From Lepidodermella squamata (Eukaryota > Animalia > Gastrotricha): 64,000 nucleotides of DNA. Numbering within the stretch: position 1 is the first letter of the stretch; each line of letters opens with the position of its first letter. The notes beneath the pieces are model-generated. The model ran no database searches, was not told where the DNA came from, and saw only the letters and a list, made by a program, of their open reading frames with translations. Where the stretch lies: assembly GCA_047495785.1 (NCBI GenBank), contig JBLDXI010000007.1, forward strand, positions 2,542,001 to 2,606,000, given 5' to 3'. This document shows positions 16,073-64,000 of the stretch, in pieces. Both the position numbers and the translations under genes were made by a program.

Positions 16073-16417
16073 TTCATAGTAATATTATCGGAAATTCTGC
16101 CGGGGTTAATGTTGTCGAGAATTTATAAGACTGATGTCTACTCCATTAACAAAACTTTGATGATACACAAAACAGCGAACGCGACAATTTGTGAAAATTT
16201 GCAGAAAATTTGTCAACATAAGAAGAAACAGCAGAAGCACGATGCATCTTATACGTAGTGACCTTTCGTTTTGTTGCAAAATGAAATGTAGAACTTGTAG
16301 CTGTTGAACTTGTAAATCAACCTTTCTCATCCGTTATTTTTATTCAAGACAACACATGTCGTATATTAACAAGAAATCTTTCAAACATCCATATATCAGC
16401 TAAGGATAGCGGTGAAA

Positions 16418-26996: not shown

Positions 26997-29900
26997 TCAT
27001 AGATGAGCGCAAATCGAGCATCCCGTACAATTTTCGTTGTGATGAATAGATATCACATTTTCATAACAAATATTTTCCTTATTCTCATCATCATCGTTAT
27101 CATCTTCACGTCGGAAAATCGTAGCCACAGCTCTAGGCGATTGCGATAGATCCCGTGTTTTTTGATCGCTTTCGATGCTGAAATGGCGAATTCCTCGCAT
27201 TCGAACTGAATCATCTGAGCTGGGCTGGAAAACAGTGAATGATAACACGTCTTCCTCGGAATAAACTCCAACGCTGGAAGATAAGGAAGAAGCGCTATGA
27301 GGCCGTTTTCTCCTTAAAACCGCCTTGATAGAACTGGGCGTTTGCTCCTCTGCCAGGCCGTAATTCGCTCGATCCGGAGGAGGAATGCCGGCATTTGATG
27401 GCCCGAAAAGTGACAAGAAAGCTGGGACGAAAATTAGGGCGTGTAATATCGATAGGAAAACCGATAGAAACATCATCCGGAAAAACGTTGAGAAAATATA
27501 AGCATCACTCGTGCTCATAGCGATGACGGAAAGAGTCGTTCCTATACAGGCTGGAATGGCGGCTAGAGCGACTTCTTCGATCAAAGCCCTGGTTTTCACC
27601 AGCCGAGCTTGCGGCGGGCTCAGATCGGCGTGATTCGGCACTTCACTGACGAGAAAGACGTAAATAGGATGGGCGATTAAATCCGAACAAAAGCTGATAG
27701 CGATGAGGAGATTGATCAGAGTTATTGAGTCGAGATCCATGTCCCATAGTTGCATCATACCGACGATACCCAGCAGGACTGATGTCACGAAAACAGTTAC
27801 CCAGAATAGGCAAGCGGGATGAGGAATGAAGAAAATCGCAACTGCGACTGTCGCACCTAAAAAAAGACGAAAAATACCCTTATTACTTGACAACTCATCA
27901 AAAAGTGCGCGCTATCAAATAAAAACGGGTAATTATGTCGAAATGCGCCCAAAAATTCAAAAATGATTGAAAAATGAAATAAAAATGACTCATGATGAGC
28001 AATTTGAGTAAAAGCGTGACCTAGAAACGTTTGAACTATAATTACCCATTATTGCTTGACAATTTTGCAAATGCGCGCGTATTAAAATATGTAATAAATG
28101 TCGCGCACAATCAAATGAAAAGGGGCAATTTACCCAGCGTCATTCCGCAGTAATACAGCGTTGTTGGAACAGCAGTTAGGTAGTTATCATAGAGCAGAAA
28201 ATTGTCGCCATACGCGTAAATATCAAGTTCAGGTCTGTAAGATTCGATGACCTTACGAAGTGACGTCATCATTCCGATTTGCCGATCAGCAGACGTTAAT
28301 TCCCTGGCCCGAAATTTGAATCGAACTTTGACTATTTTTGTCGCATTTGGGTTGATCCTTATATCGCCGCCGTGGCTGCGGTATGATTTCATTGTTTTCA
28401 AATCATAACTATCAAGAAATCCGCCGGGATATTGACGAATTTCGTAGATAAGACTCTCGCTTGAATTTACGTTCACTCCAGTAAAATTCAGCCATTTTTC
28501 GAAATCTGTCAGCCAGCATTTGGTTTGTTTCGGCCAGAAATACCCAGTTCGATGGATTTTATCCACAAAATCAAGAACTCGTGATCGAATTTTTGGTCGG
28601 CTGTAATCCAGCTCGTTATTGATAACCACCTTAACCTCATCAGCGTAATCCGAAAACAACAGCCGTTGTTGTTTCGTGTAGTCGAACATGTTCGAACTTG
28701 ATCGATAGACTCGTTCTGGCTTCAAGCCAATTTCCAGTTGAGTCACAGACCAAGCACATAGAGCTACGTAGCCGAAGAACAGGGCGATTGAAACACCTCG
28801 AACTGGAGCTTTTATCATAAAATCGACGACTTTTGTAACTAAAGGACTTCTTCCACTTGATTTTTTAGGAAAATTTGAGCACAAAATTCCGCCCTGGTTT
28901 TTCGGGACTTTGAAGCAACAACAACAGGAATGAAGCTGATTTTGTTCCATGTAGCCGCAAATTGCGAGAAAAGGCGCGAAAATCGTCATTTGTCCCACAA
29001 AATCGAAGACCATAGCCGCGATCGCGTAAATCGATAATTTGTTAATCAAAGGAAACGGCGTGTAATTCCCCACCACAAAATCGATTAAATTGATCAAAAA
29101 CGTGATAAAAATCGTCGTGCCGCCTATATGCATTGAAACCATCATCCGTTCCTCTACTGGAAGGTTAGGATCAGTTCTAGACCAGGCTTCTAACGCGATG
29201 AACATATCGTCTAGGCCGATGGCTAGGACTAAAAGTGGGACAGCCATTAGAATCGGGTTGAAATCAGGCTCGACCCATAAACAAAGACCGAAACCGGTCG
29301 AACAGGCGAAAAGCGTGGCCAGGACCCCAACCACCCCAGCCCAGGGTTTCGAGGTAACTGAATCCCTACCCAAAGCTCCAACACAGCACCATAGCATTAG
29401 GGCGATGAAGGTTAGGCCAATTTTAGGCACCATCACCAAAATCAACGACTCTTGCTCACCGGACCGTTGCGTCTCAGTCATCCACGTGTAGCCGAAATAG
29501 GGTGACTCAAACTTGTTGCTGCGTAAAAACCTGTCCAGGGCATCTTCCCATTTCAGCCAAATTGAATTCAAGAGTTTAACCTTATCGAATGGCATCGTGT
29601 TCATGCAATAAACTAGCCGGACAGCTTCGAAAGATTTGACCTGGTCAGAATCGCGGCTGATTGTCTCAACCTTTGACACGTATTTACTGAAGTCATTATG
29701 TAGGAATTGAGGGTATGTAAGGCCAACGCCGGGTATTTGGCTGAATAGCAGATTTAGCGGATCGGTTTCAGTTTCATCCGAGTCGAAATCTGATCCTAAC
29801 AACTGCCGGACGACTCTCAGCGAGAATCCGGCACATTCGCCAGTGCCTTGTCTCGTGCATAGACTATCGTCGATATCAGGATAGTCATAACTAGATTCGT

Positions 29901-30872
29901 ACCGGTAATTAACCATTTTCCCATTTGCCATCACAGGAACGGAGATGTTTCGAATCATTCGTTCGAATCGGTCAATTTCAGCGAAGGCTTGCTTTGAGAA
30001 TAAATTGTAATTTCGACCGCTGGATTCGTTGTGTTTCGCGATTAGAATGATGGAACTTGGCCGACAAGCTTGGGCGTAGGCATCGGGTACAATGAATCGA
30101 TCGCTTATGTCCCGTTTCTTACGACTCACTTCGTAGTCCGAATAATAATCGGATTCGTTCAAATGGTGTTCCAAATTTTCTGAAAAATATTTGAAACATC
30201 AAATTTGGAAAATATAAATTTTGTGGAAAAATTTAAACAAATTTGAATTTTTTATTTTTTTCCAAATTGTCTGAAAAATTGAAATTATTTGAAAAAATCA
30301 CATTTGAAATTTGAAATTTTAATTTTGTGAAAGAATTAAAAAAATTGAATTTCAATAAAATCGAGAACATTTTTATTATTTTAATTTGTGGTACCTGATG
30401 TGATATTTTGAGTCGAATTCGGGGCGTTCATTTGTGGCTCTGGGGTCGAAAAAGGATCCTGCGGCCATTCCCGATTGAAATCGATGAAATCAAGCGATTC
30501 AGTAGTAGTCATACGATTTCGACTCGGGCTGTTGTACAAAATAGTCGGGAAACGACTCGGCCTCTCCGGCTCGTCTACGTCGAACAAAATCGTGACCTTC
30601 CTTTCGTTAATCGACGGGCTATCAGTCGGTAAATAGTCTTCATTTGTCACCTGCTGCAGTTTGACTCGATAAATTCCGGCTGAAAATACAAGCCCGATGC
30701 CGATTGATGCGCATAAGATTTGGGCCGGGAATTTTCCGACGAATATGCCGTACCATGCTGTGACATAGGCGAGTAAATTAGGCAGGATCATCCAGGTGAG
30801 CTTGGGGAAAACTGGCCGCAGTTTTTTCCTACGACTCGGATCATCGCTTCTCCGCTTACAACACGATATCAT
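26997..30872 (-). CDS. Patched-related (PTR/PTCHD) SSD-RND protein A; exons 30872-30395, 30179-28134, 27856-26997
   Basis: Sterol-sensing domain with AIGLDDMFI, two large extracellular loops and a second TM block (DLDSITLINLLIAISFCSD, ILHALIFVPAFL). GT-AG junctions keep frame. Confidence 0.9.
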
Positions 30873-31508
30873 TTTAACCGTTTAATTTCAGCCTCCATTT
30901 TTCGCTTGATGGGGTCAAGAATCGAACTACAGAGAAAGTATAAAATTTAATGAATTTTCTAGAAAATTAGGATGAACTTTAAATTGCATTAATTTTAGAA
31001 GAAAATGATTTGTCGATGATTTCATTTAGGAAAAATATTTATGTCATTCTGAACGTGAGATTATTCTAAAGCAGAATTTGCTCAAGCATAGCAATATTAA
31101 TGCTATTATTTAGCGTAATAATACTGCTATGCAGGGGCACGTGTGTGCAATTGCCGGCCTCGTGCACATTTTTATTGATTTTTTTACGCGCACACACACT
31201 GCGTACCGGGTCGTATAAAGAAAAAGAGGCGTGTCACCAGGTGATATATACCTAATAATCACAATAACCCGTGTCAAATAAATGGCCGCCAAAACACACA
31301 CATCACTGCGAGTCATAGCGACTGGCCTTGCTTGCACTGCTGCTTAATCCATATTATATATAAAAAAAGCGGCACGAGAGACAAACACGCGTGGGTGCTT
31401 AGATAAATAACAACATTTTTATTATAATAAAGGAGTAAAAAAGCCATCATTAGCTGAGTGCGCACGCGAACGTGCCATTAATTCATTGCGAAAAAATTAA
31501 AAAACATT

Positions 31509-34500
31509 TTACGCCGTAATTTCAGATTTTTTGAAAGACTTTTTCGAAGATTTAGTCCCACTTTCGGATATTTGCTCCATATTACTATTTCCAGCCGCGA
31601 CTTGAAGCTTTGAATTTGACGGTCCAATGAAGCTGAGAAATGCTGGTATGAAGATCATGGCGTGAAGTATTGACAAAGCAACGGATAGGAACATGACTCG
31701 GAAAAATGTGATGAAAATGTAGGCGTCGCTGTTACTCATCGCCAAAACTGATAGAGTAGTCCCAATACAAGCTGGGAGCGCGGCGCCTAATACTTCGGCA
31801 ATTACAGCTCTCGCCTTGTCGATGCGAGCTTTTTGCCCAGTTTCCAGACTTGGGCTGATCATGAATATGTAGATTGGATGGGCGATGAGGTCAGAGCAAA
31901 AGCTGATAGCGATGAGGAGGTTGATTAGGGAGATGGAGTCGAGGTCAATGTCCCACCTTCGCATCATTCCGACGATTCCGGCTAGGACGCTGGTGACAAA
32001 GACGGCGACCCAAAATAAACAGGCTGGGTGCGGAATCATGAATAGAGACACACCAATTGTAACACCTTGGATGAAAAAAAAATCAACAGTTTCAACTTAT
32101 CGCAGGTTAAAAAACTGTGAAAAGTATTTGAAATTTGACATTTTGAAATTAAAAAATTTCAAATTTTAATTAAAATTTCAAAAATTAAAAAATATGAATT
32201 AATACCTAAGGTCATGCCGCAATAGTAGAGTGTAGTTGGCACAGCCGTCAAAAATTGGTCGTAAAGCTGAAATTCGTTCATAAAGGGTGAAAATTGAAGC
32301 TCCGGCGAGTACATCGACAGAATCTCCCTCACTTTCACCATCATGCCAACCTGTCTCGTAGGATCCGTGAGGTTCTTCGCTCGGAAACTGAATCTCGACT
32401 TTGTTATCGTTGTTCCAGCGAAATTCATTCGAATATCGTTTTGATACTCGCCGAGATAGCGACGAGTCGAAGAGCTGTAACTATCGAAAAATCCACCGTG
32501 ATCTCTACGCATGAAGCTGAGAATGTCCCGATTGGAAGTAATTTCATCCATACTTCGGCCCCTCTCGGTCAGCCAAATTTCGAAATCTCTCAGCCAGTTT
32601 TTCGTTTCTTTAACATCGCCCCAAAAATAGCCGCTATTCTCAATCTTGTAGGTAATATCTTGAATTTTATCTCTAATCCTGTGATCGCCGTAATTGACCT
32701 CGTTAACCAGGGTGACTACAACCTCAGAGCCGTAACCTGAGAAAGATTTCCGGGAAATGAACGTGTATCGATTGAGGGGCGAACTTGTTCGATAAACTCT
32801 TTCTGGCTTCAGGCCAACTTCAATCTGGGTAACTGACCAAATCGAAACGCCCAGGTAAGCGCAAAATAGGACTAGGGCTGATATTCGAAATGGCAAGGTT
32901 GTGAAAAGCTTCGAAATCCTATCTTTGATAGATTCCTTTCCTAATTCTGAAGCAGATTTTCTAACCGTTGAGCAACAGATGAGGTAGAGGATAGACCTTT
33001 TCCTTAATAGTTTAGGATTTCGCCTCGGGACATTGATACAACAACAACAAGAATGCGCCCTTTTGCTTTCCTTACCTCCAAATAGGACTAAACAAGGGGC
33101 GAATACCATCATTTGAAAGAAAAAGTCTAAAACCATTGTAGCAATCGCGTATTCAGATAAGGACTGAATTATAGGAAATGGGGTCAGATTTCCTATAACA
33201 AAATCCAACAAATTGATTAGGAATGTTATGACAATCGAAGTCCCGCCAACTTTCATAGTCATCATCATCCTAACTTCAACCGGCAGGTCAGGACTAGTAT
33301 TGGACCAAGCTTCTAATAGGATGAACATATCATCTAACCCAATGGCTAGGGTGAGTAAAGGAACTGCGAGTAAAATAGGAGGGAGTATAGGATCTTTCCA
33401 TAGCTGGATTCCGAACCCAGCGCAACAAGCTAGGGTTGTGGAAAGGACCCCGACAAAACCGACCCAGGGTTTCGACCTAACAGCATCATTCATCAAAGCC
33501 CCGACAGTGCACCACAGCATTAAAGCGGCGAAAGTTGCGACTAATTTCGGCAACATATCTTCAACTAACGCATCCTGTTCCGTCCTTTTCAATTCGTCGG
33601 TCGATAGGAAAACGTTGAAATAATTGTTTTTATATTTCGATAGCTTTTGGGCTAGTTTCCGCTCCCAAATTTCCCATGGCCTTATTTGCATTAGGATGGA
33701 TTGTCCTAATTCGGCGTGGTAATACATGTTTAGGACAAAAATTAGCCGAATCGCCCCGATTTTCGTGACAAACCCCTGGCTATCGGTCTCAACATCGCCG
33801 AAAACTTGGGTAACATCCTCGCCATTATGATAAGGCCATTGAAGTCCCAAACTTGGCGCTTTGATGAAAAGAACCGACAAAGGATCTTCCTTATCGGGTA
33901 AAATATCGAGAATAGCCTGGCGAAATTTGTGAAAATTCATCCCGGCACATCGACCTACAGGATCTTTAAGGCAAAGGCTTAATTTCCGAGGATTCTCAGG
34001 CTCGATGTACCTAATAGGATCCGGCCATTTCGGTCTAAGGTCCAGGTTCAAATTAAAGACAATTTCCTCTTCGAACTTCAAAATTTCGGAGAACATTTCC
34101 TTAGTGAAAAGGTTCCCCTTTTTCGCTACGACCATAATACTAAGTTCCCTAGGAATTTGGGGTAAATTCCATGGTGCGGGTTTTTGAGGTTTAACCTGGC
34201 TATTTAGGTCTGGGCTGTAGGACTGGTTGAAATATTCGAAGGACGTATTAGCTGGTATCAATCCTTGCTCGATTTCTCGTTGAATCGCTTGCCATTTCAG
34301 TTCCATAGCCGTTAGATCCCGTTTGGACCTTCGCGGTAGGTTCGAAACATTCCTCACCGTATCGACATACATGTCCTTTCGACTCATATAAAAATCTCGA
34401 AATTGCTCCCTGGATTTTACCGTCGGGCTGTCTGTTGGTAAAAAGTCCTCAGTTTGCATTTGAACAACCTTGATCCGCGAAAGTCCTGACGCGAAAACCA

Positions 34501-34672
34501 GCCCCATTCCAAGGATGATACTCATAGCTTGAAGCGGATATTTGCCGATGAATAGGCCGTACCATGACATTAGATAGGCGAGTAGATTCGGGCAAATCAT
34601 CCAATCAAAGCGGGGAAATACCGGCTTTTGAATTTTGTCACTACTACTCATCATTATTAGCGAAAAACACAT
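31509..34672 (-). CDS. Patched-related protein B; exons 34672-32206 and 32065-31509
   Basis: Same motifs as PTR-A with a short C-terminal tail; a phase-1 intron keeps frame. Confidence 0.9.
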
Positions 34673-34822
34673 TAAAAATTAGTCGAGTAACGTAGGAATA
34701 ACAACGTGTTTACGTTAATATATATATACGAGCATGCCTTTATTCATCATATTGTGTTGAAAAAAATTATAATACCACAAAAATTAATATGAGTCAAATA
34801 TAAAAAATTGCAATAATTTTTT

Positions 34823-35473
34823 TCACAGATTAAAATGCGGCTTAGCCGGTAACATTGTTATACCAGTTCTTGGGCCGAGTAATAGCACGATTTCGACATT
34901 ATCAAGCGGATTTGGATGATAAATTTGTTGCACATAGCCTGAGTCATTTGTCCAAGTCGCTGAATTCATCTCGATTTTCGGCTCTTCTTTAATAGAAGGG
35001 AAAATTCTAGCGGTATTCTGCTGTTTTGTCGCCGGCTTTTCCTGCCTCCGAGGTTCCCTTCGCCGAGGTTCAGATGTGGTTTTCTGGGCAGTCTGAGGGT
35101 AGTTTTGATAGTCGTGTCTTGACGAGTAGGATGAAGACAAGTAGGACGGGCTGACTGATCTTGACCGAAGTGAATGGGGAGGATTTGCGTAGGAAAACAT
35201 GGTTGAAGGCGCCTGTTTTCGAGGCGAAATTGCGTCGAATTTGAAAATACTCGAGGCTGAGTCGAATAATTTCGGTCGCGTTTTTATCCGATCAGCGTCC
35301 AATTTTTCGTAATTATTCACCGAAAACGAGACAGTCGACGCTGCGGATGTGTTGCGCGACGTTTTTTTATTGCCTAAATTGTTATAGGCGTAAGACGGGT
35401 TGCGCAACCGGTCGTTGTAGTAACCGCTGTTATTTGGTGACAAAAGTGACAGGTGGGTCGAAGTCGCCTGCAT
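34823..35473 (-). CDS. Ser/Arg/Pro-rich low-complexity protein (216 aa) sharing its C-terminal motif with PTR-C and PTR-D
   Basis: ATG-initiated open frame ending PRTGITMLPAKPHFNL, compared with PRMSGAQMLPARPKFNI and PRIGELMLPARQRFNV. Confidence 0.6.
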   Translation of the reverse strand: MQATSTHLSLLSPNNSGYYNDRLRNPSYAYNNLGNKKTSRNTSAASTVSFSVNNYEKLDADRIKTRPKLFDSASSIFKFDAISPRKQAPSTMFSYANPPHSLRSRSVSPSYLSSSYSSRHDYQNYPQTAQKTTSEPRRREPRRQEKPATKQQNTARIFPSIKEEPKIEMNSATWTNDSGYVQQIYHPNPLDNVEIVLLLGPRTGITMLPAKPHFNL

Positions 35474-36421
35474 AGTAATTATTATGTGCAGGTATGCGAA
35501 TAATAAACAGTGTATATGTATGTGTTGTAAGCTGAGCGACTTTTTATTAACAGGTGTTTCAAAACAGTAGCAGTGATGCCTGATGTGTAAAGCCGTGACA
35601 TATAAACGTACTCAATAGTGTTACACATTACATACGGCGGCATTTAACCCTTTGCACGCGGCTGCACTTTTTTTTTGCTTTCAACTTTTTCTTTTGGCTG
35701 GATGGCGCGACTGATACAAAGGATCTTCAATGTACTGAGATGTTGATTCCACTTTAAACTTGAATTTTTAGCAAAAATTGCTCAATTGAAGCCAAAATTG
35801 AAGAATATTTATTGGAAAATGCTGAAAGCTGATTGCTGACTACGGCAATTTATCCGGGATATTTTCTTTCAAATATTCGTTCATTCAGAGAAAATAATTG
35901 GTTTGAGTAGCGCGTGGGTCTGAGTGGGTGGCGTGGGTCAAATGGAAGCCAAGTTTTTGCCCCTGTCTGAGGACGGCACAAGACAGCACAGTAAAACCTT
36001 GCCAAATAAAAAATATGAATTTTTTGCATTTAATTGAAGATGAAGCCAAACTCGAGAGAATATATCAGAATATTTCAGAATTTTCCATTAAATCTCGGTA
36101 ATACTTTTTGCCGGATATTCTTAGGTTCTACGACATTTGCGACAATTGCAAGGTGTTCAGACATACAACGACACAAGAGCAACGACGTTAAAGCAAAAAA
36201 TAAAAGAGAACATGTAATCAGGGTTGTTTTAAACAAACGACTCGTTGTTACAAACGATTTTTTGATAGTTTTTGATAGTTGATAGTAAAATGAAAATTTT
36301 AGTGCTGCATTAGTGTTGGTGAAAATGAAATATAATTTAAACAAATAATACGAGAAAATCGAGGACATTTTGAGGATATTCCGCTAGAAAAGGCTCCGAA
36401 ACTTCTAAAAATGAGTATATA

Positions 36422-36880
36422 TACAGTGCACCTTTTTATAACGAACCGGTCTTATAGCGAACTTCGACTATAGTGGCACGAGCCAAACTACGCACTTTTA
36501 CAAGTTGCCAACCTCGTTTTTAACGAACTTTTTATAGCGAACTTTGGGCTATAACGAACGATTCTGGGTGGCTCGGCGGCAGCTTGAAGCGTGATATTTA
36601 CATTGTTTTATAGCGAACTTGGGTCTCGCGCGCGCTCATTCTCGCAAATTTCATGTATTTCATCAATTTTGGGGATTCAATTATATGATCCATTACGACT
36701 TAATCACGCTCGACGAGCACTTGTGTCAGCATTTATACTCTACTTCTGACCCTTCTTAAGCCAAATCATCCTGAAAATTGGGGTCTACCAATTTTTTTTA
36801 AATTTCTCTACTTCGTTTGTAACGAACTTTGCTTATAGCGAACTTTTTTAAGTGGCACCGTAGTGGTTCGTTATTAGTAG
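36422..36880. mobile_element. Degenerate pogo/Tigger-like non-autonomous element
   Basis: Starts TA-CAGTG; many direct copies of tata(a/g)cgaac(t) near both ends; the right end has gttcgttat but is degraded. Confidence 0.55.
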
Positions 36881-37449
36881 TAGTTTTTTCCAGACGTTAC
36901 TTCGATTTTGGTTGTTACATTGTAACATGTGTAAACATGCTTAAAAACACTGATTTAATTGTAAAGGTAAATATTTTCTGCAGGAACATTACGCAGTGAA
37001 ATTCGCAAAAAGTCCTACGATAAACGGCAAACTAATCAAAATGAGAACTTTTATCTATCTATTAACCGTTAATTGGCGGTTGTCAAGAACAAACACGGAC
37101 AAGGGACTTTTCTGTTGTTAATTACCAAAATAAATACTTTGCATTATTGTCGCTGCGCTAATTTTGTGACAATTTTTGTGGGAACCGGCATCATCATTTC
37201 GCATTTTCTTAATAATTCTTCATATGTCGCTGCAAAGTTTTAACTCATTTTTTTTCAGAAATTTTAATAACGTCAAACTTTAGTAAGATGTTACAAGTCA
37301 GGAATATTGTTTACCGTTATAAAGTATAAGGCTTGAGCTCCAATTCCAGGTAAGAATGATATGAAATAAAACACCTCTGGAACTTTTCTTATTACAACAA
37401 GCCTCCTCTAAAATCATCACTTTTATTAAAAAATCTTTTAATTTTTCCG

Positions 37450-40400
37450 CTAAATGTTGAACTTTGGCCTGGCAGGCAGCATTTGAGCGCCACTCATTCG
37501 AGGATTGCTCATGAGAAAATTGTGATCTTTCGATATATTTATGAACCTCCCGCCACTACTTTCCGTCAATCTCCGAGATGGCGGTGCCGGTATCGATGAG
37601 CCAATTCCAGAAGATTCCCTTGATAATTGATCAATCCTAGGAACTGTCAAAGAGTTGGTTTGCTGCCTCTGAGGCGGCGTCCATTTCCTGAGCTTCTCCG
37701 ACACGATTCCTACACCACGAGGCGCCAATTTTGCCTCGCTTTTCCGCGTGTAATTCGACTTGTCGTAACTCCTCGACCGCAACCTAGCCGCATCTCGTTC
37801 GTACAGCTCCCGGCTTCGCTTTTTCACCTCATCCCTAACCTCAGCTATCACCTCTTCACTCGGCGTCTCGAGAGACGATGTCGTCGATTTCTGGGTCAAA
37901 ATAACCGGCGGAACTTCCTGCCGTTCGATGGTCATCGGCAGGCCAGTCGGCTTTTTCCCGCCATTGGCGATCAACGCGAATTCCCTCAAACTGCTCCAAC
38001 CATGCGGCCGAACAGATGATCGTTTCGATTTGGCCTGGTAATACGTGTACTGAGAGCTGTGAATTGTCGGAGGCTTATTGACCTCCTTTTTCACGACAGT
38101 AACCGGCTCGTAGACGTAGTAGTAAGTTTTTTCAGTTTTCGCCTTCTCAGAGGGAACCGATTCAAAATCATCATCGCCGTCCTTTCTAATTTTAGCAGCA
38201 ACCTGAATCCTAGATTCAGAAGGTCCAATGAATGATAGGAAGGCTGGGATGAAAATCATGGCGTGAAGAATTGATAGGACGACTGATAGGAACATGACTC
38301 GGAAGAATGTGATGAAAATATAGGCATCACTGGTACTCATTGAAATTACTGATAGAGTGGTCCCAACACAGGCTGGAATAGCAGCTCCTATCACCTCGCG
38401 AACTACGGCTCTAGCCTTTTCAAGACGAGCCTTTTTGCCAGTCATCGGGGTTCCGTCTTCGTTATCAGCTGGGCTGATCATGAAAATGTAGATAGGGTGA
38501 GCAATAAGATCCGAGCAGAAACTGATGGCGATGAGGAGGTTGATTAAGGACACTGAGTCCAAATCCATGTCCCACAGCCGCATTAGGCCGATAATTCCGG
38601 CGAGGACTGAGGTGACGAAAATAGCGACCCAGAACAAGCAGGTAGGATGAGGAATCATCAACAGAGCAACTCCAATTGTAACAGCCAAAGTGATTCCCTA
38701 GTATTTGAAAAATTTCAATATATTTCTTTCAAAAATTTCAATTAAAAAATGGAAAATAAAAAAAATAATTTAAATAAAAATCTTTGAAAAATTGGTTATT
38801 AGTCGTATTCCTATATTCCTAATCATAATAAAATTTGAAAATTGATAATTCCGAAATTATTTATTCATTTTTTGTTTCAAATTTTGCAATTTTTGAAAAT
38901 TTGCATTTTCATCGAATTCATTAAATTATTTTTGAATTTTTCCAATTTCGATTAAATTAATTTTTCTCGCTTACACTGTAGTAAAGAGTTGTCGGTACTG
39001 CTGATAAAAACTGATCATAGAGCTGAAACTCGTCCATATAGGCGTACATCTCAATTTCATCCTGGTACAACGCCAGAACTTTTCGTATCGCCTGCATCAT
39101 CGCCATTTGCCTGGCCGGCCCTGTCATGGCCTTGGCGCGAAATTTAAACCTCGACATAGTTATCTGTTTCCCATCCACCGTCATGCGAATCGACGAGCCG
39201 TACTTATCTCTAGATCCGTACAGGTAAAAATTGCTGTCTGTACTACTGAAAAAGCCATTTTCGCGCCGGATTTCGTATAGGAGGTCAGTGTTATTCTTCA
39301 GTTTGGTCAAGTCGACCCCAGATTTTTCGGCCCAGCTGTAGAAATCCCCGAGCCAAAATGACGTGCCGTAGCCAGCCCAAAAATAGCCCGAGTCTTCGAC
39401 TTTTTTCGCAACGTCGTACAATTGCCGCTTGATTTTAGGCGAGGTGTAATCTATTTCCTCGGCTATAGTCACTCGGACCTCTTTACCATACCTGGAAAAA
39501 ATAAATAAGAATTGAAATAAGTTTAATTAAAAAGTATAATTCGAATTATCAAAAGTTAGGGTTCCCACGATTAATCCGAGGTTCCGGCGCTAAATCATTA
39601 TCAATTTTTGCTAAATTTAGGATTAAGGCAATTCAAAGAATTGAAATAACAATTTTTGAAATTTTAAAATTCAAAGTTGAAGCCGAAATTTTTGAATTTT
39701 TGAAAATTGAAAATTGAAATTGAATTTTAAAATTAAATTCTGAAATTTTGAATTTTAGGAAGAGTGATTCGCCCAGCTTAAGTTCCAGAAAAATGGAGAT
39801 TCTAGGATATATACATATTTTTTCAAATGTATAGAAAATATAAAAATATTGCTCGGTAGCCTAACAAATTGCTCACCCCGTGAAAAGCAATCGCTGTTGT
39901 TGGAAGTAGGCGTAAATGTTAGATCTCGCCGGGTAAATTCTCTCAGCTTTCAGCCCAACGCTCATCTCAGTTATCGACCAGCAAGAAACACCAACGTAAA
40001 CCGCGAATAGCACCATAGCACAGATTCGAAACGGCAGTGAAACAATTAAATTGATGAGAAATTTCGCAATAACACTATCCTCCTCTTCTTCAGGCTGCAA
40101 TTGTTTAGCAGCCTCAGGCTTTTTCTCATCCAAAAGAGGCTCGAAAAATCCTCCGCCAGCACAACATGTCACATAACATGCGTTAGATTTCCTCAAAGTT
40201 TCACCCCGGCTTTTGACTGTAGCGCAGCAACAGCAAGAATGGCGGTTTTTCTCCTCCAGCCTTCCGATCAGAACCAGGCAAGGCGCGAAAATTGTTAATT
40301 GGAAGAAAAAGTCCAAAACCATAGTTGCGATTGCGTATTCCGACAAATTTTGAATGATAGGAAACGGCGTGTAATTTCCTATGACAAAATCTAATAAATT

Positions 40401-41816
40401 GATGAAAAAAGTCACGACAATCGATGTCCCGCCAACATTCATCGCCAACATCATTCGCTCTTCGATAGGTAAGGACGGGTCGGTATGGGACCAGGCCTCT
40501 AGTAGGATGAACATATCATCCAACCCAATAGCCAGGGTGAGTAGAGGAACAGCGAGTAGAATAAGTTTAAACGGCTCATCTAGCCAGTTTTGAATTCCGA
40601 AACCTGCAGCACATGCAATGAATGTTGAAAAAATTCCGATGACCCCTAGCCAAGGTTTTGACCTAACTGCATCGCCCATCAAAGCTCCGACAGCGCACCA
40701 GGCCATAAGAGCGACAAAGGTGAGGAGCAATTTCGGCACCATGTTGATAGCAAGAGAGTTCTGAGTGCCCTGTTTCTGCGCATCACTCATCCAATACACG
40801 GTGAAGTAAGGATTTCCTTTGTATTTAGTCATAGTCTCAGCAAATTTCCTCTCCCATCGATCCCAGACTTTGATAGCCATCATGAAGTAGTCGCTGTAGT
40901 ACTCGTTGATGCAATACACCTGCCGCATAGCTCCGATTGATTTGACATTCGAATTAGGCCGGCCGTCGACGGTTTCAACCTGCCCGAAGAACATGCTCAT
41001 GTCGTAGCCGTTGTACTGCGGCCAGGTTAGGCCGATGCCGGGCAGGCGGGAGAAGACCAAGTTCAGCGGGTCAATGTTCGCGTTTTGAGAGTCCCGGAAT
41101 AGGTACCGCATGACTTTGAGGTTAAACCCGCCGCACTCTCCAGTTCGCTGCTTCGTGCAAACCCCGCTTCCGGGTACGTCCTTATCTTCATATGAAAACG
41201 AGCCGGAGATTCCTGTTGTAGTTTGAACCTCGACTGTAATGCCGAAAATGAGGTTCTCAAACGCTTCAATCTCCTTAAGCATTGACTTTTCGAATAGGTT
41301 GTATGGCTTCTTATTCGGGTCGGATGTGTTGGTTTTCGCGACAAGGAGTAAGGTACTAACCCTGCAGGATTGCTCAGTCATACCATCCGGCCCGACCAAA
41401 GCCTCCCTTTTCCGCCGCCTTTCCGGATTAGTCGTTGGCTTAGGGTTAGTCCTTGGGGGTCTTACTGTAGGCGGTAGAGACGGCGGGAAGGGAGAGACGT
41501 AAACAGTCGGGTGGCTCCTATCTGAGATTTCAAACTCGAAATCCTTAATCCTCTCCGTTTTCGATGGGCTGTCAGTAGGCAGGAAGTCCTCAGTTTTCAT
41601 TTCGGTGATAGTCAGCCGGGAGAGGCCTGCGACCATTACAGCAGCAAGTCCCAGCGTTAGGCACATAATTTGGACAGGAAACTTCCCGATGAGAAGACCA
41701 TACCATGACATGAGATACGCCAGGGTGTTAGGGCAGATCATCCAGTCGACGCGGGGGAAGACAGGGCGAAGTCGTACCGCCCTTCGTCGGTACTTGAGCG
41801 GAGTTTCCGACTTCAT
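37450..41816 (-). CDS. Patched-related protein C; exons 41816-39877, 39491-38975, 38697-37450
   Basis: SSD motif AIGLDDMFI, second TM block and a long disordered C-tail; in-frame GT-AG junctions. Confidence 0.9.
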
Positions 41817-42004
41817 AAATAACAGCTTAATATCTTAGTCATGAAGCTTAAGCACTGCTATGTATGCATGTAATGACGTGCAGTCGTGTACGCGCACTAA
41901 ACGTAGGTGTAACTAAGTATATACCAAATGTCAACTCCAAAACACGAGACGCATCTTCATTAGTCAAACATAAATCTTTATTGAAAAAAACTAGATGGAA
42001 AGAT

Positions 42005-45000
42005 TCACACGTTGAACCGTTGTCTTGCGGGTAGCATCAATTCGCCGATTCTAGGAACGTTGAGTAAGGCTGATGTTTTATTCGAAGAGCCGGAAGTCGG
42101 CATGTTTCCGGTCGTTGACATTCCTATCCCGGATGAAGAAAGAGATCGGGAACGTAGCGGCTTTTTAGACACCCTGGGGGTCGGGGCGGCTGGTCGAGGT
42201 GGTAACGGTGGTGGTATCGGTTTCAAAGCGGTTGGGGGAGGGGCCCAACTCCTGACCTTCTCCGTGAACATCCCGCCAGAATCTCGAGGGATGAATTTCA
42301 ACTTGTTTTCGATACTTCTTGACCTTTCCTGACTCGCAGATCTCATTCGACGTTGCACTTGTTGTTCCAGCCTTTGAATCTCTATGCTGCGTTTCCTTAC
42401 CTCAGCTTGAACCTTTCGCACTTGATCTTTGCTCGGGTAAGTTTGACGGGTTATAGTCGGAGGTAGGCGGCCGTTCCTTTCGTAGGTTAATCCGGCCAAA
42501 TCCCTTAAGCGACCTCCTCTTCGATGTACGAAGGATCGAGTAGACTCCTCATCGTCCTTTACCCGGCGCCTTGTAACAACATTTTCGTTCCGGATAGGAG
42601 CAGGAGGGGTGATTTTGGGTGCTGGTTGCTCAGGAACCGGAAGGCTTTCAACCACAGACTCAACTTCTGTTGCAGTAGATTCGGCCTTATTGCCAGTCTT
42701 AATCGCAATTTGAATACGGGAATCCGATGGTCCGATGAATGAAAGGAAGGCCGGGACGAAAATCAAAGCATGAAGAATTGACAGGACGCAGGCTAGGAAG
42801 AGGATTCGGAAGAATGTGATGAAGATGTAAGCGTCACTTGTGCTCATCGCAACAACTGATAAAGTTGTTCCAACACAAGCTGGAATCGCGGAGCCGAGTA
42901 CCTCCCTAACTACGGCTCTAGCCTTTTCGAGACGAGCCTTCTTACCAGTCATCGGGGTTCCGTCTTCGTTATCAGCTGGGCTGATCATGAAGATGTAGAT
43001 AGGATGAGCAATAAGATCAGAGCAGAAGCTGATCGCGATGAGGAGGTTGATTAAGGAGACTGAGTCCAAATCAATGTCCCATAGCCTCATTTGACCGATG
43101 ATTCCTGTTAGAACTGATGTGACGAAAACTGCGACCCAGAAGAGGCAAGCAGGATGCGGAATCATAATGACTGCAACCAGAACAGTTACACCCAAAGTGA
43201 TGCCCTGTAAAAGTAGAAAAGAAAATTTGTAATTGCAATAGTCGAGTCCGAGTATGCAAAGTTAATACTTACGCAGTAATAGAGGGTAGTCGGAACTGCT
43301 GTGAGGAATTGATCGTAGAGTGGGAAATCATCCATGAAAGCATAGGCCTCGAAGTCATCAGCATAAATGTCTAAAATCTTTCGAATGGTCTGCATCATCG
43401 CAATTTGCCGACGCGGCCCCGTCATGTCCTTCGCCCTGAACTTGAATTTCGTCTTCAAGATACGGATACCATCCTGGCTCATCCTTATCATTCGGCCATA
43501 CTTATCTGAAGCTCCGTAAAGTTCGTATTTATCATTAGAGGCCGAGTAGAATCCTCCAGGCCATCTTCTGACTTGATACAAAATATCAGCATTATTGCGG
43601 AGAGATGTGATGTTTACTCCATCTCGCTTTGCCCAATTGAAAAATTCCCGTGGCCAGAATAGCGATTCTTCAGCGGCCCAGAAGTAGCCGGAATTTTCAA
43701 TTTTATCAGCCATATCGAATAATTTCCGTTGAATAACAGGATTTGCGTAATTTATGTCAGACGTGATCACTACTGATACTTCCTTTCCGTATCCAGTGAA
43801 CAGTATTCGATGCTGCTGGACGTAGGCATAGATATTAGACCGAGCCCGGTAAACTCGCTCAGCTTTCAGCCCCAGCTCCATCTGAGTAATCGACCAAACT
43901 GACGCCGCGAGGTAGCCAGCGAATAGACCGATTGCGATAATTCTGAATGGCAAAGACGTGATTCCTTTGAGTAGAAGTTGAGCAACCTTGCTATCCTCTT
44001 CTTCATTTTCGATAGCCGTGGCTGAGCCCACAAGGCTAGTTTTATCATCGAATTCACTTGAAAAACCACCTCCAGCACAGCAGACCAAGAAACAACCGCC
44101 TGATTTTTTACTCCTCTGCTCTCGAGTTGGTACCGTCGCGCAACAGCAGCAAGAATGAGCGTTTTTCTCCTCAATCTTGCCGAATAGGACTAAACATGGA
44201 GCGAAGACCGTTAATTGAAAGAAAAAGTCTAAAACCATGGTTGCAATGGCATAACTTGACAATAGCTGAATTACTGGAAACGGGGTGTAGTTTCCAATAA
44301 CGAAATCTAACAGATTTATCAGAAAGGTAACGACAATTGAAGTACCACCGGTGTTCATTGCTAGCATCATCCTTTCCTCGACGGGGAGTTTCGGGTTAGT
44401 ACAAGACCAAGCTTCCAGCAGAATGAACATATCATCCAACCCGATCGCTAGGGTGAGGAGAGGTACCGCGATTAGGATGATTTGAAACTTCGGATCCATC
44501 CAGAGTTGAATACCAAAACCTGCCGCACAGGCTATAAGGGTGGAAAACACTCCGATAACCCCTGTCCAAGGTTTGGACCGAACAGCATCTCCCATCAAAG
44601 CTCCAACCGCGCACCAGAACATAAGGGCGGCGAATGTTGCTCCTAATTTGGGGGCCATGTCGATAGCTAGAGTATTTTGCTCCGCTTGTTTCTGGGCGTC
44701 ACTTAGCCAGTAAACATTAAAGTAAGGATTTCCTTTGTATTTACGCAGAGTTTCGTCGAATTTGTTCTCCCAACGCGTCCAAACTTCAATGGCTCGCATG
44801 AAGTAGTCGTAGTAGTACTCGTTAACACAAAATACCTCCCTCATCGCCCCGATCCTCGTGACTTGGTTATTCGGCTTATTGTCAACCGTCTCAACTTGTC
44901 CGAAGAATTGGCTCAAATCATACGTGAAATAGTAGGGCCACGTTAGACTCCCAGGAAGTTTCGAGAAAACTAGATTCAAAGGATCCCGGCCATCGGGTTG

Positions 45001-45822
45001 TCGGAATAAACTTCGCATGACCCGCAGGGTGAATCCACCACATTCGCCGTTTGGGTGTTTCGTGCAAACCCCCGACCCAGGTACGTCCATGTCTTCATAG
45101 TGAAACCGGCCAGTCATTCCACTCGTAGTCTTCACCTCAACAGTGATGTTGTAAATGATGTTCTCTAGAGTTTCGATCTCTTTTAGCATAGCCTTTTCAA
45201 ACAAGTTGTAAGGACGTTTTAGCGGGTCGGAGTTGTTAATTTTTGCGACGATCAACATCGCACTGACTCGGCAGTTTTGGTTGACGCCATCCGGCCCAGA
45301 TAAGCCTTGCCTCTTCTTTCGAACTTTGAAAGTCGGGACGAGGTCGTTCAACGGGGTTTTACCTTGTGGAATGACTGCCCCGGAGACATCTTCCGGCGTT
45401 GTAGTTCTCGGCCCTCGAAGGGGCGGAGCATCCGTTGCGTCGACTCTCAACATGCTAGGGTAGTCACTCGGGTCGCTTTTCTCGCTGAAATCGAACATGA
45501 TAGATTGAGACCGCTCTTCGATAGATCTACTGTCTGTTTGCAAGAAGTCCTCAGTTTTCAGTTCGACAATGGTAATTCGGGATAGCCCAGCTGCGAACAT
45601 AGCACCCATTCCAAGGGTGACGCACATGACTTGAACCGGGAATTTTCCGATGAGGAGACCGTACCAGGACATGCAGTAGGCCAGCGTGTTTGGACATATC
45701 ATCCAGTCGAAGCGTGGGAAAATCGGGCGTAGTCTTGACCGCCTTCGCTGGTATTTTTGAGGTATCTCCGTGGGACTGGGTTCATCACTTGTTGCTGCAA
45801 TATTGCCATTTCGAGAGACCAT
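42005..45822 (-). CDS. Patched-related protein D; exons 45822-43273 and 43204-42005
   Basis: As PTR-C, with a 68-nt phase-0 intron and a Pro-rich C-tail. Confidence 0.9.
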
Positions 45823-56095: not shown

Positions 56096-57301
56096 ATGAA
56101 GATAAAATTTGCTTACTTTCTCATTAATTTGTTGCCACTGGTGATTCACAGCGAGGAAGAGGCAAGCAATACCCTATTTGATCGACTCAAGAGCAGTTTC
56201 TTCGAACACTGCCCAGCCGCTCAATCAAAATATTTGCCTCTAGAGACGATTCGCTGGAACAGATTGACGGGAGAAAACAATGACAACTTCATCACTGTGC
56301 AGGTATCTTTGTCTTTATTTCGTTTTCTCGAGATCAACGACGTCGACCGACGGCTTTCGGTTTTGGGGGAAATAGAATATTTTTGGAATTACCCCTGTCC
56401 GAACATCACCTGCCAGAATCTTTTGGACGGCGACGATTTAGCTGTTTGCAACAGTACAGCGCTACACTTTACGGCTTCAACGCAGGACTATTGGTACCCC
56501 ATTTTGACGCATGTAAATGCATTCGAAAGAGCTCGTCTATCGGCTGATGATCTTACAGCTTTGCCAATGCGGATATTTCCCCTAATGCCAACGGGTTACC
56601 TTTCGCACTTTGCGCGTTTTGACTCAACCTGTAAATCATTTCAATTCAACCAATTCCCCTTTGACTCGTTGAATTGCTCGATTATGCTGGACACGGATGA
56701 TCACTTCGTAGTTTACGACCCGATTTCGCTGGCTATCGACAGTGGTTCGATATCGTCTTTCATAAGAGACGTAGAGCTATGGGAACTCAAAAATCTAGCT
56801 CCTCGGCGGGTTATGATAAAATATGTCGATAGCGACATCCCAACAGCCTACAGCCGAGTTTATTTTTCGATGCTTTACAAGAGGAAGCCGTTCTTCTACA
56901 TCTGCAACACGTTCCTTCCAACAATGCTGCTTTCTGTAGTGCAAATAGCGTCACTTATCGTGCAGCCTGATTCAGGAGAAAGGGCAAACTTATGTGTCAC
57001 GATTATGCTGGCTTACACAGTAATTCTAACTATGATATATGACCAGATACCGCGAACCTCAGAACCTGTCTATTTGGTTTACATGGTTGTTACCAAGTTC
57101 GTGATCGGTGGATTCATCACAGTATACATGATTTTCATCTGGCAGCTTGGTATCAAACCCAAGACGGGCAAAAAGAAGCTCAAAGACACATTTGGTAATT
57201 TGCCGGCCGCGCGAATCGCTGACCTAGCGATAGCTGGCATATCAACGATATCCGTCATAGTTTCCGACGTAATGTATTTCAGTTATATGATGGCTGGGTG
57301 A
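56096..57301 (+). CDS. Divergent pentameric (Cys-loop) ligand-gated ion channel subunit, nAChR/5-HT3-like, intronless, 401 aa
   Basis: Signal peptide, WYP motif, Cys-loop C..FPFD..C, W-E-L, pre-M1 KRKPFFY, DSGER before M2, M2-M3 IPRTS and four TMs. Confidence 0.9.
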   Translation: MKIKFAYFLINLLPLVIHSEEEASNTLFDRLKSSFFEHCPAAQSKYLPLETIRWNRLTGENNDNFITVQVSLSLFRFLEINDVDRRLSVLGEIEYFWNYPCPNITCQNLLDGDDLAVCNSTALHFTASTQDYWYPILTHVNAFERARLSADDLTALPMRIFPLMPTGYLSHFARFDSTCKSFQFNQFPFDSLNCSIMLDTDDHFVVYDPISLAIDSGSISSFIRDVELWELKNLAPRRVMIKYVDSDIPTAYSRVYFSMLYKRKPFFYICNTFLPTMLLSVVQIASLIVQPDSGERANLCVTIMLAYTVILTMIYDQIPRTSEPVYLVYMVVTKFVIGGFITVYMIFIWQLGIKPKTGKKKLKDTFGNLPAARIADLAIAGISTISVIVSDVMYFSYMMAG

Positions 57302-60796: not shown

Positions 60797-61122
60797 AATT
60801 GTCATTATTCGCTAAACTCTGTCAATTTGGTAATCTCCTTTCGCGTGATTTTTCCGCTTTGTTTATGCGTGAACTCATGGGTGTATCAGTGGGTGACTCG
60901 TCAACCTTCAACACTTGACCCCGAAACGATCTTATTATATGAGTTAATTCTTAATAAATGTTAATCACGCTTATTATTTAAATCAACATTTTGAATACCA
61001 TCTTCATTTTCAACGGGTGACATTTTGTAATTACAGTCAAATAAAATTAACTAATGATAAAAAAGTTGTTATCGAATAGTGTCAAATAACTGTTCACCGG
61101 TCGATTCGCTCGCATTCACAGT

Positions 61123-61476
61123 TCACCGGCGTCCATATCCGAGAATAGGCAGGACGAACTCGCGATGGTTCGGATTGTACGGTTGGACCCAAACATTGCT
61201 CAGCGATTTCTGCTCAGCTGCAGGTTCGACAACAATGTCACCGTCGGACAGGTCGTCATCCATAATCAGGTCATTGATCGCCTCAATATTGTTGAATATA
61301 TCGTTATTCAATTGGTTCTGTTATGAAAAGGAAGGCTTGGGACAGATACGAATTACTGAAACTCGACTAACGTAATATTGTTTCGCCGGTGCCATCGGAC
61401 CGCCATAGACTGTTACAACCAAAATGGAAGCCATCGAATACAGGATGAGACATTTAAAAAACTTCGAATTTGCCAT
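61123..61476 (-). CDS. Putative amidated-peptide precursor 1; exons 61476-61372 and 61317-61123
   Basis: Signal peptide MANSKFFKCLILYSMASILVVTVYG, a 54-nt in-frame GT-AG intron and an acidic spacer; ends R-EFVLPILGY-GRR-stop. Confidence 0.75.
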
Positions 61477-62200
61477 GTCTTTGAATAATATTTTTAAGTT
61501 TACAGGAAATGCGTCTCTTCGCCGCATTTATAGCTTGAAAATAACGATGCTAATTCTTGTAAACAGTAACGCTCGTTTTAACACGTCCCTGTAGGGTTCG
61601 AAAAGGTTGTAAGCAACGCGATAATCAAATGATAATGGATTTTCAGTCCTTGGCTAGACATATTTTCATAAAATCACTTCAGAATGAAAATCCATTCAGC
61701 ATTCAGTAGACAAAAATACCCCATTTTTTTATTTTCGAACTTTGGACGCTACGTTATTGGGAAATGCTGTAATTTTGGGGTATTCAACGCCCAATAGAAG
61801 CACTAAACTGTTGCCATAAGGATGTTATAAATTTTTAAACGAATGAATCAATTGATAGTCCATGGGGAATTAGCTGCAGAATTGTCTTCAAATGTAGTTA
61901 TTCGTAGCGGTGAAAGCGGGGGTTTAGGGGCTGCATTCTTGCTAGAAGACACATCTTTCGCTGATGAACCTGTGGTGCAATAAAATTTTTCAATGAGTCC
62001 TAAGTCTCAGAACTGCACTCAAAAAAGCAACCCAATAAGCAGGTTTCATGAAAAATATTTATTTTGTAAATCTTTTGAACGGCATGCCAGAGCCAATATC
62101 AACATCAACTGATTGCTGAGTGTCATTTTACATTTTACATCGAAATATCTAATTTCGTGATATTTACCAATGATTATTTCCTAATAGAGGGTAATACGAT

Positions 62201-62612
62201 TTAACGACGACCCAAGCCAACGATAGCTGGCTCAAATTGGCGGTAGGAGTCGTCGTAATCTGATGCGATTTTGTTATAGTCATCTTCATCGTCATTTTCA
62301 GCATCGTTCATACTGCTGCCGTAAGGATTGTAGGGTGCTGCATTCATACTGTCTCCAGATTTCAGTGATGGGTGGTTCCCTTGTAAGCCCATTCGAGGAT
62401 CGTATCGACGCTTGATAAAATTTCACAAAAACTTAAAAAATGGAAAAAATGAAAGAAGTACGAAAAATAATTTCCCACAGAGCTAGGCTCCGTCATAATT
62501 AATTTTAGGAATTTTCCTTAGAAGCCTCTTTTACCTGGAGAATAAGTCCATATGCTGCATCGTGGGCCATCAAATAAATGACAGCAAATACGAAGCACAG
62601 TTTGATAAACAT
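62201..62612 (-). CDS. Putative amidated-peptide precursor 2; exons 62612-62535 and 62410-62201
   Basis: Signal peptide MFIKLCFVFAVIYLMAHDAAYG, a phase-0 GT-AG intron and an acidic spacer; ends R-QFEPAIVGL-GRR-stop. Confidence 0.75.
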
Positions 62613-63050
62613 GTTGACGAAGGAGTTTGATATATTCGAAAATATTTTGAAAATAGAATTATGTGGAATCAGGCTTTATTCCGGTCAAAGCGTTAAAACG
62701 TGGGATTGTCAAATGTGGGCGGCAGTTGTGACCAGTACAGCTGATTGCTGAGTGCTAACACGAGCTAATTAAGAGACCGCTATTCAATTCTCTTCGGAGT
62801 TTTCGCCATCAATAATTCATAGGCTTCCACACTTCCACGCTCCTCTGAGAGCGGCCCATCGCATGATACTCAGTTATATGACGTCACACGACACATTTCA
62901 AGGTGGAAAGTTATTTTAATAGAAAAAATGTATAACCTGACAGATCTAAGTGGTCAAAGTCGCAGGAAAATTCAGAAAATATTAAGCGGAACATTTTGTT
63001 GAGTTATGGTGATTTTAAGTCTGAAATAATATAGGTTTATCATTGGACAT

Positions 63051-63311
63051 CTAGCGGCGGCCTTGGCCAGCGAGCATAGCCCAAACGTCGCCGTTGAAAT
63101 TCACACCATCGATTTGACGATCGCCAAAGTCCTGTTGGTGGAATCCATCGTCAAATGCGAAATCGCTCAGAAGGCTCGATCGTTTGGAAGCTCTTGCCGC
63201 TTTCGAAAATTTCGATAGCTTCTTGTTGTAGCCTCCCAACGCCTCGGTGAAATCCAGCAGGGCGAGCACAACCAAGAAGACGGCCAAGTAGAGCATGATT
63301 TTTCCTGCCAT
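63051..63311 (-). CDS. Putative amidated-peptide precursor 3 (single coding exon)
   Basis: Signal peptide MAGKIMLYLAVFLVVLALLDFTEA, internal KK and KR sites and an acidic spacer; ends R-QIDGVNFNGDVWAMLAGQ-GRR-stop. Confidence 0.78.
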   Translation of the reverse strand: MAGKIMLYLAVFLVVLALLDFTEALGGYNKKLSKFSKAARASKRSSLLSDFAFDDGFHQQDFGDRQIDGVNFNGDVWAMLAGQGRR

Positions 63312-64000
63312 TTTGTGTTGATAAAATCTCGTAAATAAAACTAGAAATGAAAAGTGTAAATTTGTAGGACTAAACATTCGTTTGTATACACTGCTACTCA
63401 AGCTGAATAATTGGGGTAAAATGAATTATCGTTTGCAGACAGTTTGAGAGTAGAGGGCGGCTATAGTTCAAGTGAGATAGAAATGTCGCGGTTTGTTGCA
63501 GCGTAAAAAATTGCCGCGTATATATAGTTGCGCGCTTTTAATTAAATTGCGCACTCTAATCCGCGACCAGGGCTGCTTGCGCCCAGACAAAAAAATACGC
63601 AAGTAATCAGCTGATAATCGGATGCTGCGGCTCATTATCATTATCATCGTGGCTTGTTTTTTTGCAAATTATTGACATGGCTTAGGCTCAATTACTACGG
63701 CTGCCGGACGTAGAATGTCACTTCCTGCGCTGTTATTATAAGCAATTTCCTGCGCATTGTGTGGGTTAATACTTTTTGATGAACTCCCCTGCACTTTTAG
63801 GAAGACCGCTTGTCGCGTGGAATGATAATACCGTCGGACGCAGTTGATTAAGCGCGGCGGGGCTCATCGAAATCTTAACCAGGTCAAGTGGTTCGTTTTT
63901 AGATGTTCGATCTAGAATGTAGCTCTAAGTCTTCGTACGTCAGACAAATGATGAAAAAACTGTCACTTGAACTTCGACTTGTGCAGATAGGAATTCGTAA

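Follow-up and report, generated by a model that had tools for sequence, protein, structure and literature searches.

Three small neighbouring genes of the gastrotrich Lepidodermella squamata encode putative precursors of C-terminally amidated peptides

We analysed a 64,000-nucleotide stretch of the genome of the gastrotrich Lepidodermella squamata (contig JBLDXI010000007.1 of assembly GCA_047495785.1, positions 2,542,001 to 2,606,000 of the forward strand; hereafter the window, with positions counted from its first letter) and focused on three small minus-strand genes, g1, g2 and g3, that all lie within 2.2 kb. A first-pass annotation had proposed that three adjacent genes at this site, two of them spliced, encode prohormone-like proteins; the sequence and its translation bear out the genes and their positions, and the transcript evidence described below contains both predicted splice junctions. 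The genome (a 121 Mb assembly in 151 contigs) has compact genes and long intron-free frames, and the G+C content of the window is about 42%.

We compared three public sequencing runs, termed X1, X2 and X3, over positions 60800-63700; X1 and X3 originate from two different studies. In X1 and X3 the contigs are restricted to exons and the bins between genes have zero depth; poly(A) tails and a spliced leader are also present, so that both runs behave as RNA. In X2, every bin is covered at a depth of about 90-130, and because of this even coverage the run behaves as DNA.

The transcription unit of g1 spans 61007-61504 on the minus strand, with the mRNA running from about 61504 to a poly(A) site at 61007. 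It is represented by an X1 contig in which 61504-61372 is joined to 61317-61007 and which ends in a non-genomic A19 tail, and a TATAAAT sequence is located at 61532-61526, about 25 nt upstream of the 5′ end. The coding sequence (CDS; 61476-61372 plus 61317-61123) specifies 99 amino acids. The coding part of exon 1 (61372-61476, 35 codons) encodes a signal peptide with likely cleavage after VYG (residue 25), followed by 10 residues, and is separated by a 54-nt GT..AG intron in phase 0 (61318-61371, after codon 35) from that of exon 2 (61123-61317, including the stop codon). Exon 2 contributes an acidic spacer, an Arg (61164-61162), the predicted nonapeptide EFVLPILGY (61161-61135) and a Gly-Arg-Arg end (61134-61126). 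The joint 61317/61372, which skips 54 nt bounded by CT..AC on the plus strand and hence GT..AG on the minus strand, is present in X1 (depth 60.8) and in X3.

The g2 transcription unit covers about 62040-62664 on the minus strand, its RNA contig extending upstream to 62664, and the CDS (62612-62535 plus 62410-62201) specifies 95 amino acids. The coding part of exon 1 (62535-62612, 26 codons) encodes a signal peptide with likely cleavage after AYG (residue 22), and a 124-nt GT..AG intron, again in phase 0 (62411-62534, after codon 26), precedes the coding part of exon 2 (62201-62410, including the stop codon), which encodes Arg-Arg, an acidic, Tyr-rich spacer, an Arg (62242-62240), the predicted nonapeptide QFEPAIVGL (62239-62213) and Gly-Arg-Arg (62212-62204). 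The corresponding joint 62410/62535, skipping 124 nt, is present in X3, and the loose contig ends of X1 at 62412 and 62535 continue into the opposite g2 exon. The 3′ untranslated region (UTR) contains AATAAA at 62063-62058; the exact 3′ end is not fixed because the X1 and X2 contigs both break at 62077. An imperfect 35-nt palindrome lies within 62019-62078 and overlaps this polyadenylation signal.

The mRNA body of g3 (62896-63340, minus strand) follows a trans-splice acceptor AG at 63342-63341 and comprises a 29-nt 5′ UTR, an intron-free CDS (63051-63311) for 86 amino acids, an ATTAAA signal and a poly(A) site at 62896. The protein starts with a signal peptide (likely cleavage after TEA, residue 24) and continues with Lys-Lys and then Lys-Arg (63185-63180), 39 residues (63179-63063) that include a lone Arg (63119-63117) before the last 18, and a terminal Gly-Arg-Arg (63062-63054). 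As for g1 at 61007, the g3 poly(A) site is marked by non-genomic T-runs, corresponding to minus-strand A-tails. In all three mRNAs the first AUG opens the proposed frame, and the introns preserve it.

In both X1 and X3, the g3 contigs end their genomic match at 63342, just past the AG, and run on into 23 letters that do not occur in the window. This 23-mer, which terminates on g3 with ...TCTGCGAATTTGATTTGTGTCTAAG, has 33 genomic copies compared to 0 for a reversed control. The copies are clustered, with tandem arrays at the sites inspected, for example at C17:1137309-1142026 (contig:position; spacing about 0.6-0.8 kb), C19:1472966-1476087 and C54:2837689-2839197; GT comes next in the leader genes, and both copies inspected read AG|GT at this point. 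These loci are a spliced-leader RNA gene family, and this family together with the AG acceptor implies that the g3 mRNA is trans-spliced at 63341/63340. The leader has no match in Rfam at the gathering score or in the published literature searched, and at up to 3 mismatches this genome does not contain the spliced leader published for rotifers (PMC3795323, Table 1). Among taxon markers, nematode cuticle collagen, arthropod cuticle protein and GH6, taken to indicate tunicate cellulose synthase, gave no match in this genome, but they gave none in the control genomes either; look-ups by exact sequence likewise had no match. We also considered an operon in the order g3, g2, g1 but rejected it: g1 is preceded by a separate TATA box and its mRNA begins without the leader, and g3 is polyadenylated at a site of its own. 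Each of the three genes forms an individual transcription unit. Contig depth, a weak measure of expression, is about 3000 (X1) and 110 (X3) for g3 versus about 60 and 9.5 for g1, resulting in g3/g1 ratios of about 50 and 12, respectively.

Each protein has the layout of an amidated-peptide prohormone, as the first-pass annotation had claimed. We called signal peptides by a heuristic that combines a Kyte-Doolittle hydrophobic core with small residues at -3/-1, and by this measure g1, g2 and g3 all possess a cleavable one: each N-terminus has 1-2 basic residues followed by a hydrophobic core of 12-15 residues (12-residue mean 2.5-3.1, versus at most 0.7 in the rest of the protein), and potential cleavage sites follow at VYG|G, AYG|L and TEA|L, respectively. 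At the other end, Gly plus a dibasic pair, in the form GRR-stop, closes all three frames. The last internal basic residue is in every case a lone Arg, followed by Glu in g1 and by Gln in g2 and g3, and the distance from this Arg to the C-terminal Gly is 9, 9 and 18 residues, respectively. In g1 and g2 the spacer is acidic, with 10 and 12 Asp/Glu, respectively, among about 60 residues, and contains no Cys; that of g3 is first basic (KK, KR) and then acidic. The predicted peptides themselves are acidic to neutral and hydrophobic, with an isoelectric point of about 4.

Such ends are rare. Only ten G-[KR]-[KR]-stop sites exist on the two strands of the window, and the three of them that end open frames of at least 60 amino acids are exactly g1, g2 and g3, all on one strand. 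In 200 mononucleotide shuffles of the window the mean number of such frames was 0.135 and the maximum 2, so that the 3 observed exceed chance.

The runs contain a second haplotype, with 16 substitutions and 6 gap positions over 252 nt of the g1-g2 spacer region, and we mapped the listed haplotype differences to codons. Among these, g3 carries 7 synonymous and 0 non-synonymous variants over codons 8-71, which has a probability of about 1.4e-4 given 5 transitions and 2 transversions with synonymous fractions of 0.34 and 0.17. In g2 there are 10 synonymous and 8 non-synonymous variants; the Arg-plus-nonapeptide segment holds two, both synonymous, and the non-synonymous ones fall in the signal peptide and the spacer. 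In g1 there are 2 of each kind, and the last 19 codons are free of variants. No listed polymorphism changes an amino acid of a predicted peptide, and selection on g3 and on the sequences for the g1 and g2 peptide ends is purifying, not diversifying. Separately, the haplotypes of the DNA-like run X2 diverge by about 6% plus indels in non-coding sequence (61789-62040 and 62077-62318), and both forms recur in X1, which is labelled as another organism. The occurrence of both haplotypes in differently labelled runs implies either very high heterozygosity or that the labels cover one species complex.

The first-pass annotation had treated the three genes as one family. This view holds for g1 and g2, which, as judged from their sequences, are tandem paralogues. 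Their C-termini align as Y-x4-R-[EQ]-F-x3-I-[LV]-G-x-G-R-R, with an end-anchored score that is reached in shuffles with GRR held fixed at p of about 2e-4; the local alignment has a z of 3.5 (13 of 2000 shuffles reach the score), and both genes have a phase-0 intron shortly past the signal peptide. The likeness is confined to the Arg and the last 9 residues, and the spacers have diverged. The similarity of g3 to g1 or g2 is not significant (p of 0.05-0.17) and its CDS has no intron, which suggests that g3 is either unrelated to the pair or diverged beyond recognition; the hydrophobic-hydrophobic-Gly-x-amide likeness of all three covers too few residues to count as evidence. When the genome was searched in six frames at E<=10, each gene matched only itself, and no further copies were found. 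The pattern Ile-hydrophobic-Gly-x-Gly-Arg-Arg-stop has 9 genome matches compared to 5 for the control, and the only precursor-like frames among them are g1 and g2. In addition, three identical 24-mers (C36:814637, C42:429494 and C42:436651) encode IFGS-GRR-stop with only 8 open codons upstream; these may belong to a repeat element or form the very small last exon of a repeated gene.

The genome encodes an amidating enzyme and convertases for the predicted processing. On contig C20, an exon for a signal peptide plus PHM matches rat PHM at 1e-19 versus dopamine beta-hydroxylase at 1e-4, and a 393-amino-acid frame that lies downstream of it in the same orientation, at a distance of about 0.5 kb, matches rat PAL (3fvz) at 3.5e-44. 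By these matches the locus is identified as a gene for bifunctional PAM (PHM plus PAL). The proprotein convertase P-domain (P_proprotein) occurs at at least 10 loci, so that convertases are represented alongside PHM and PAL, and there are 19 Peptidase_M28 loci, among which glutaminyl cyclase was not told apart. The top Cu2_monooxygen match in the genome (C12:759231, a 585-amino-acid frame) appears, judging from its translation, to have an extra N-terminal region before the catalytic domain, DBH-like rather than PHM-like, and about 30 further DBH-like Cu2_monooxygen matches, several with in-frame stops, form a large array at C13:1992822-2363499.

Homology searches agree with the earlier impression that the proteins belong to no recognisable family. 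Pfam returned no family for g1, g2 or g3 at E<=0.01 or at E<=10, and 5.8 billion protein clusters contained no match for g3 or for the second exons of g1 and g2. A phmmer search of g3 against 1.84 billion representatives gave two matches (E of 9.5e-7 and 4.3e-5), which we judged spurious because both are repeat or low-complexity proteins (1478 and 1662 amino acids) aligned over the g3 spacer. Exon 2 of g2 had no match in a protein-feature atlas search, metagenome scans found no relative, and literature searches with the peptide strings and C-terminal motifs yielded no relevant paper. The nearest neighbours of g3 in a protein language model are neuropeptide precursors (PDH, DH31, NPF, spexin, GnRH and galanin, at 0.86-0.89), which we treat as a lead only. 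On this basis, g1/g2 and g3 would represent two new orphan families of amidated-peptide prohormones.

We consider it probable that g1, g2 and g3 are independently transcribed prohormone-type genes of an invertebrate with leader trans-splicing, and that their secreted products serve as extracellular signals, most likely as neuropeptides or hormones. In the proposed pathway, the signal peptide would be cleaved as each product enters the secretory pathway, a convertase would cut after the C-terminal Arg-Arg, a carboxypeptidase would remove both Arg residues, and bifunctional PAM would convert the exposed Gly into a C-terminal amide. An additional cut after the last internal Arg would then release EFVLPILGY-NH2 from g1, pyroGlu-FEPAIVGL-NH2 from g2 and pyroGlu-IDGVNFNGDVWAMLAGQ-NH2 from g3; alternatively, g3 could yield a 39-residue amide released at Lys-Arg. 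These three amides are the mature products that had been named at the outset. Their Gly-dibasic ends stand, and the N-terminal cut is less secure because the lone Arg has a non-canonical context and g3 has Lys-Arg 39 residues before the Gly. Three points speak for the cut at the lone Arg: g1 and g2 share the Arg plus 9 residues, the polymorphisms spare this segment, and Gln or Glu, the residues able to form pyroglutamate, occupies P1′ in all three. Both this cleavage and the cyclisation of the N-terminal Gln or Glu are put forward with more reserve than the Arg-Arg cut, trimming and amidation; we prefer the 9-residue products for g1 and g2 and give the 18-residue and 39-residue products of g3 about equal weight.

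Several observations weigh against this interpretation or parts of it. None of the three lone Arg sites has Lys or Arg at P4, P6 or P8, there being only a His at P2 in g1 and at P8 in g3, so that the usual monobasic rule does not predict cleavage there, and the constraint over the whole length of g3 fits a longer product. The peptides, acidic to neutral and hydrophobic as they are, resemble no family that has been matched to a receptor. The contig depth of g3 is high for a neuropeptide in whole-animal RNA, even if depth is a poor measure, the evidence for expression consists of bulk RNA contigs, with the peptides themselves being predicted, and 33 further haplotype differences lie outside the list on which the variant counts are based.

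In a somewhat unlikely alternative, cleavage takes place at dibasic sites only and the mature products are longer: a cut after Lys-Arg would release an amide of 39 residues from g3, a cut after Arg-Arg one of 67 residues from g2, and g1 would yield its entire propeptide of 71 residues as an amide. Besides the missing basic residues at P4, P6 and P8, this alternative draws on the canonical KR (g3) and RR (g2) upstream of the proposed cut and on the purely synonymous listed variants of g3 (7 of 7 over codons 8-71), by which its spacer is constrained too. It does not explain why g1 and g2 resemble each other only in the Arg and the last 9 residues, with diverged spacers that carry non-synonymous polymorphisms, or why Gln or Glu directly follows the Arg in all three, and long acidic, Cys-free, low-complexity spacers are typical of pro-regions and not of hormones. 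It is highly improbable that the frames are open merely by chance within small transcripts that are non-coding or not translated: all three proteins are shorter than 100 amino acids, with no homologue and no Pfam family, but the GRR-stop frames outnumber the shuffled expectation, all three begin with a signal peptide, synonymous variants are in excess, and the frame opened by the first AUG of each mRNA is kept across the introns.

The same processing chemistry would also operate if the genes encoded secreted amidated peptides of exocrine or epidermal cells with a non-neural role, such as a pheromone, a defence or glandular secretion, or an egg or mucus component. The very high contig depth of g3 compared with g1 and g2, seen in X1 as well as X3, is consistent with this possibility, as are the restriction to the lineage as far as all searches reach and the tandem duplication of g1/g2 with fast-evolving spacers. 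We nevertheless regard it as unlikely, since the peptides are neither cationic nor amphipathic, unlike typical antimicrobial amides, and since purifying, not diversifying, selection acts on g3 and on the g1 and g2 peptide ends.

A 17-nt motif that contains an E-box, CACTCAGCAATCAGCTG, is located at 62738-62754 on the minus strand, about 75-90 nt above the 5′ contig end of g2, and a second copy, CACTCAGCAATCAGTTG, lies at 62106-62122 on the same strand, in the 3′ UTR of g2 and about 600 nt above the start of g1. The element CACTCAGCAATCAG[C/T]TG has 15 genome copies at up to 1 mismatch compared to 0 for a reversed control (examples are C20:2150212 and C48:1117188, 1118852 and 1120522) and is a possible shared cis element. 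The C20 copy sits between two tandem minus-strand genes for small secreted acidic proteins (C20:2148712-2151728) in whose C-terminal segments, read from genome sequence alone, one basic residue precedes a Cys pair (...YTR|TACLSCDS... and ...ATK|SACHFKCES-RKVRK), in a style like that of g1/g2. Elsewhere in the window (1656-18814, 26997-45822 and 56096-57301) lie arrays of intron-free genes for class C G protein-coupled receptor-like proteins (4 copies, ANF_receptor plus 7tm_3-like), together with Patched/sterol-sensing-domain genes and a Cys-loop channel of divergent sequence. Neighbouring receptors had been suggested as targets on which to test the peptides; we discarded the idea that they are partners, because class C receptor-like proteins and Cys-loop channels are, to our knowledge, not usual peptide-receptor classes, and proximity is therefore no evidence.

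A more far-reaching version of our interpretation, which we offer only tentatively, is that g1/g2 and g3 define two new families of amidated, pyroglutamylated signalling peptides released by non-canonical cleavage at a single Arg, that g3 is among the most abundant peptide messages of the animal and that the 17-nt element marks a wider group of as yet unannotated genes for single-peptide precursors. Should the peptides be produced, two orphan ligand families would be added to a lineage whose peptide signalling is essentially uncharted, and concrete masses and synthetic ligands would become available for the de-orphanisation of receptors. The case illustrates that precursor genes of fewer than 100 codons without homologues, whether spliced or trans-spliced, can be found in raw sequence through their processing grammar alone and then validated by public RNA data. 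The kind of gene is itself well known and lineage-specific precursors of amidated peptides are common, so that the result is a useful annotation rather than new biology.

Of the known systems, PDH/PDF is closest to g3 in layout. A PDH/PDF precursor has about 80 amino acids, with a signal peptide, a spacer peptide and a single C-terminal 18-residue amide that precedes Gly and basic residues; g3 agrees with this layout and, by prediction, with this peptide length, and a PDH cluster is its second nearest language-model neighbour (0.89). However, g3 has no Pfam match (PF06324 included, E<=10), phmmer returned no PDH-like protein, and PDH is freed by a dibasic cut, in contrast to the lone Arg that precedes the g3 18-mer. 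Membership of g3 in this family is thus not supported by sequence. The predicted Val-Gly-Leu-amide end of the g2 peptide recalls the hydrophobic-Gly-Leu-amide end of the allatostatin-A/buccalin peptides, which have a C-terminal FGL-amide or GGL-amide and a Y/F-x-F-G-L motif and occur in many copies flanked by dibasic sites. In contrast, g2 contains a single copy (AIVGL) without this motif, g1 ends in PILGY with a Gly-Tyr-amide, and we found neither repeats nor a homology signal; we therefore did not assign the pair to this group, which is defined by multiple copies and the motif. Precursors of amidated peptides from amphibian skin and insect venom likewise consist of a signal peptide, an acidic spacer and one C-terminal peptide with a Gly plus basic end. 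Their peptides are cationic and amphipathic and follow Lys-Arg, whereas those predicted from g1-g3 have an acidic to neutral character and a lone Arg in front of them, and sequence and taxon are unrelated. A partial parallel exists to the precursors of short cnidarian and placozoan pyroGlu/amide neuropeptides and to the orphan precursors reported in neuropeptidome surveys of lophotrochozoans and xenacoelomorphs (for example PMC8557429 and PMC6188537). Precursors of these groups are usually multi-copy, whereas each of g1-g3 has just one copy, placed right at its C-terminus, and no common motif was found in the literature. In other respects these groups resemble what is predicted for g1-g3, their peptides being likewise short, hydrophobic and doubly protected and their precursors lineage-restricted. 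Such precursors are recognised only by their signal peptide and Gly-dibasic motifs, and their N-terminal processing departs from the dibasic rule, as we propose for g1-g3.

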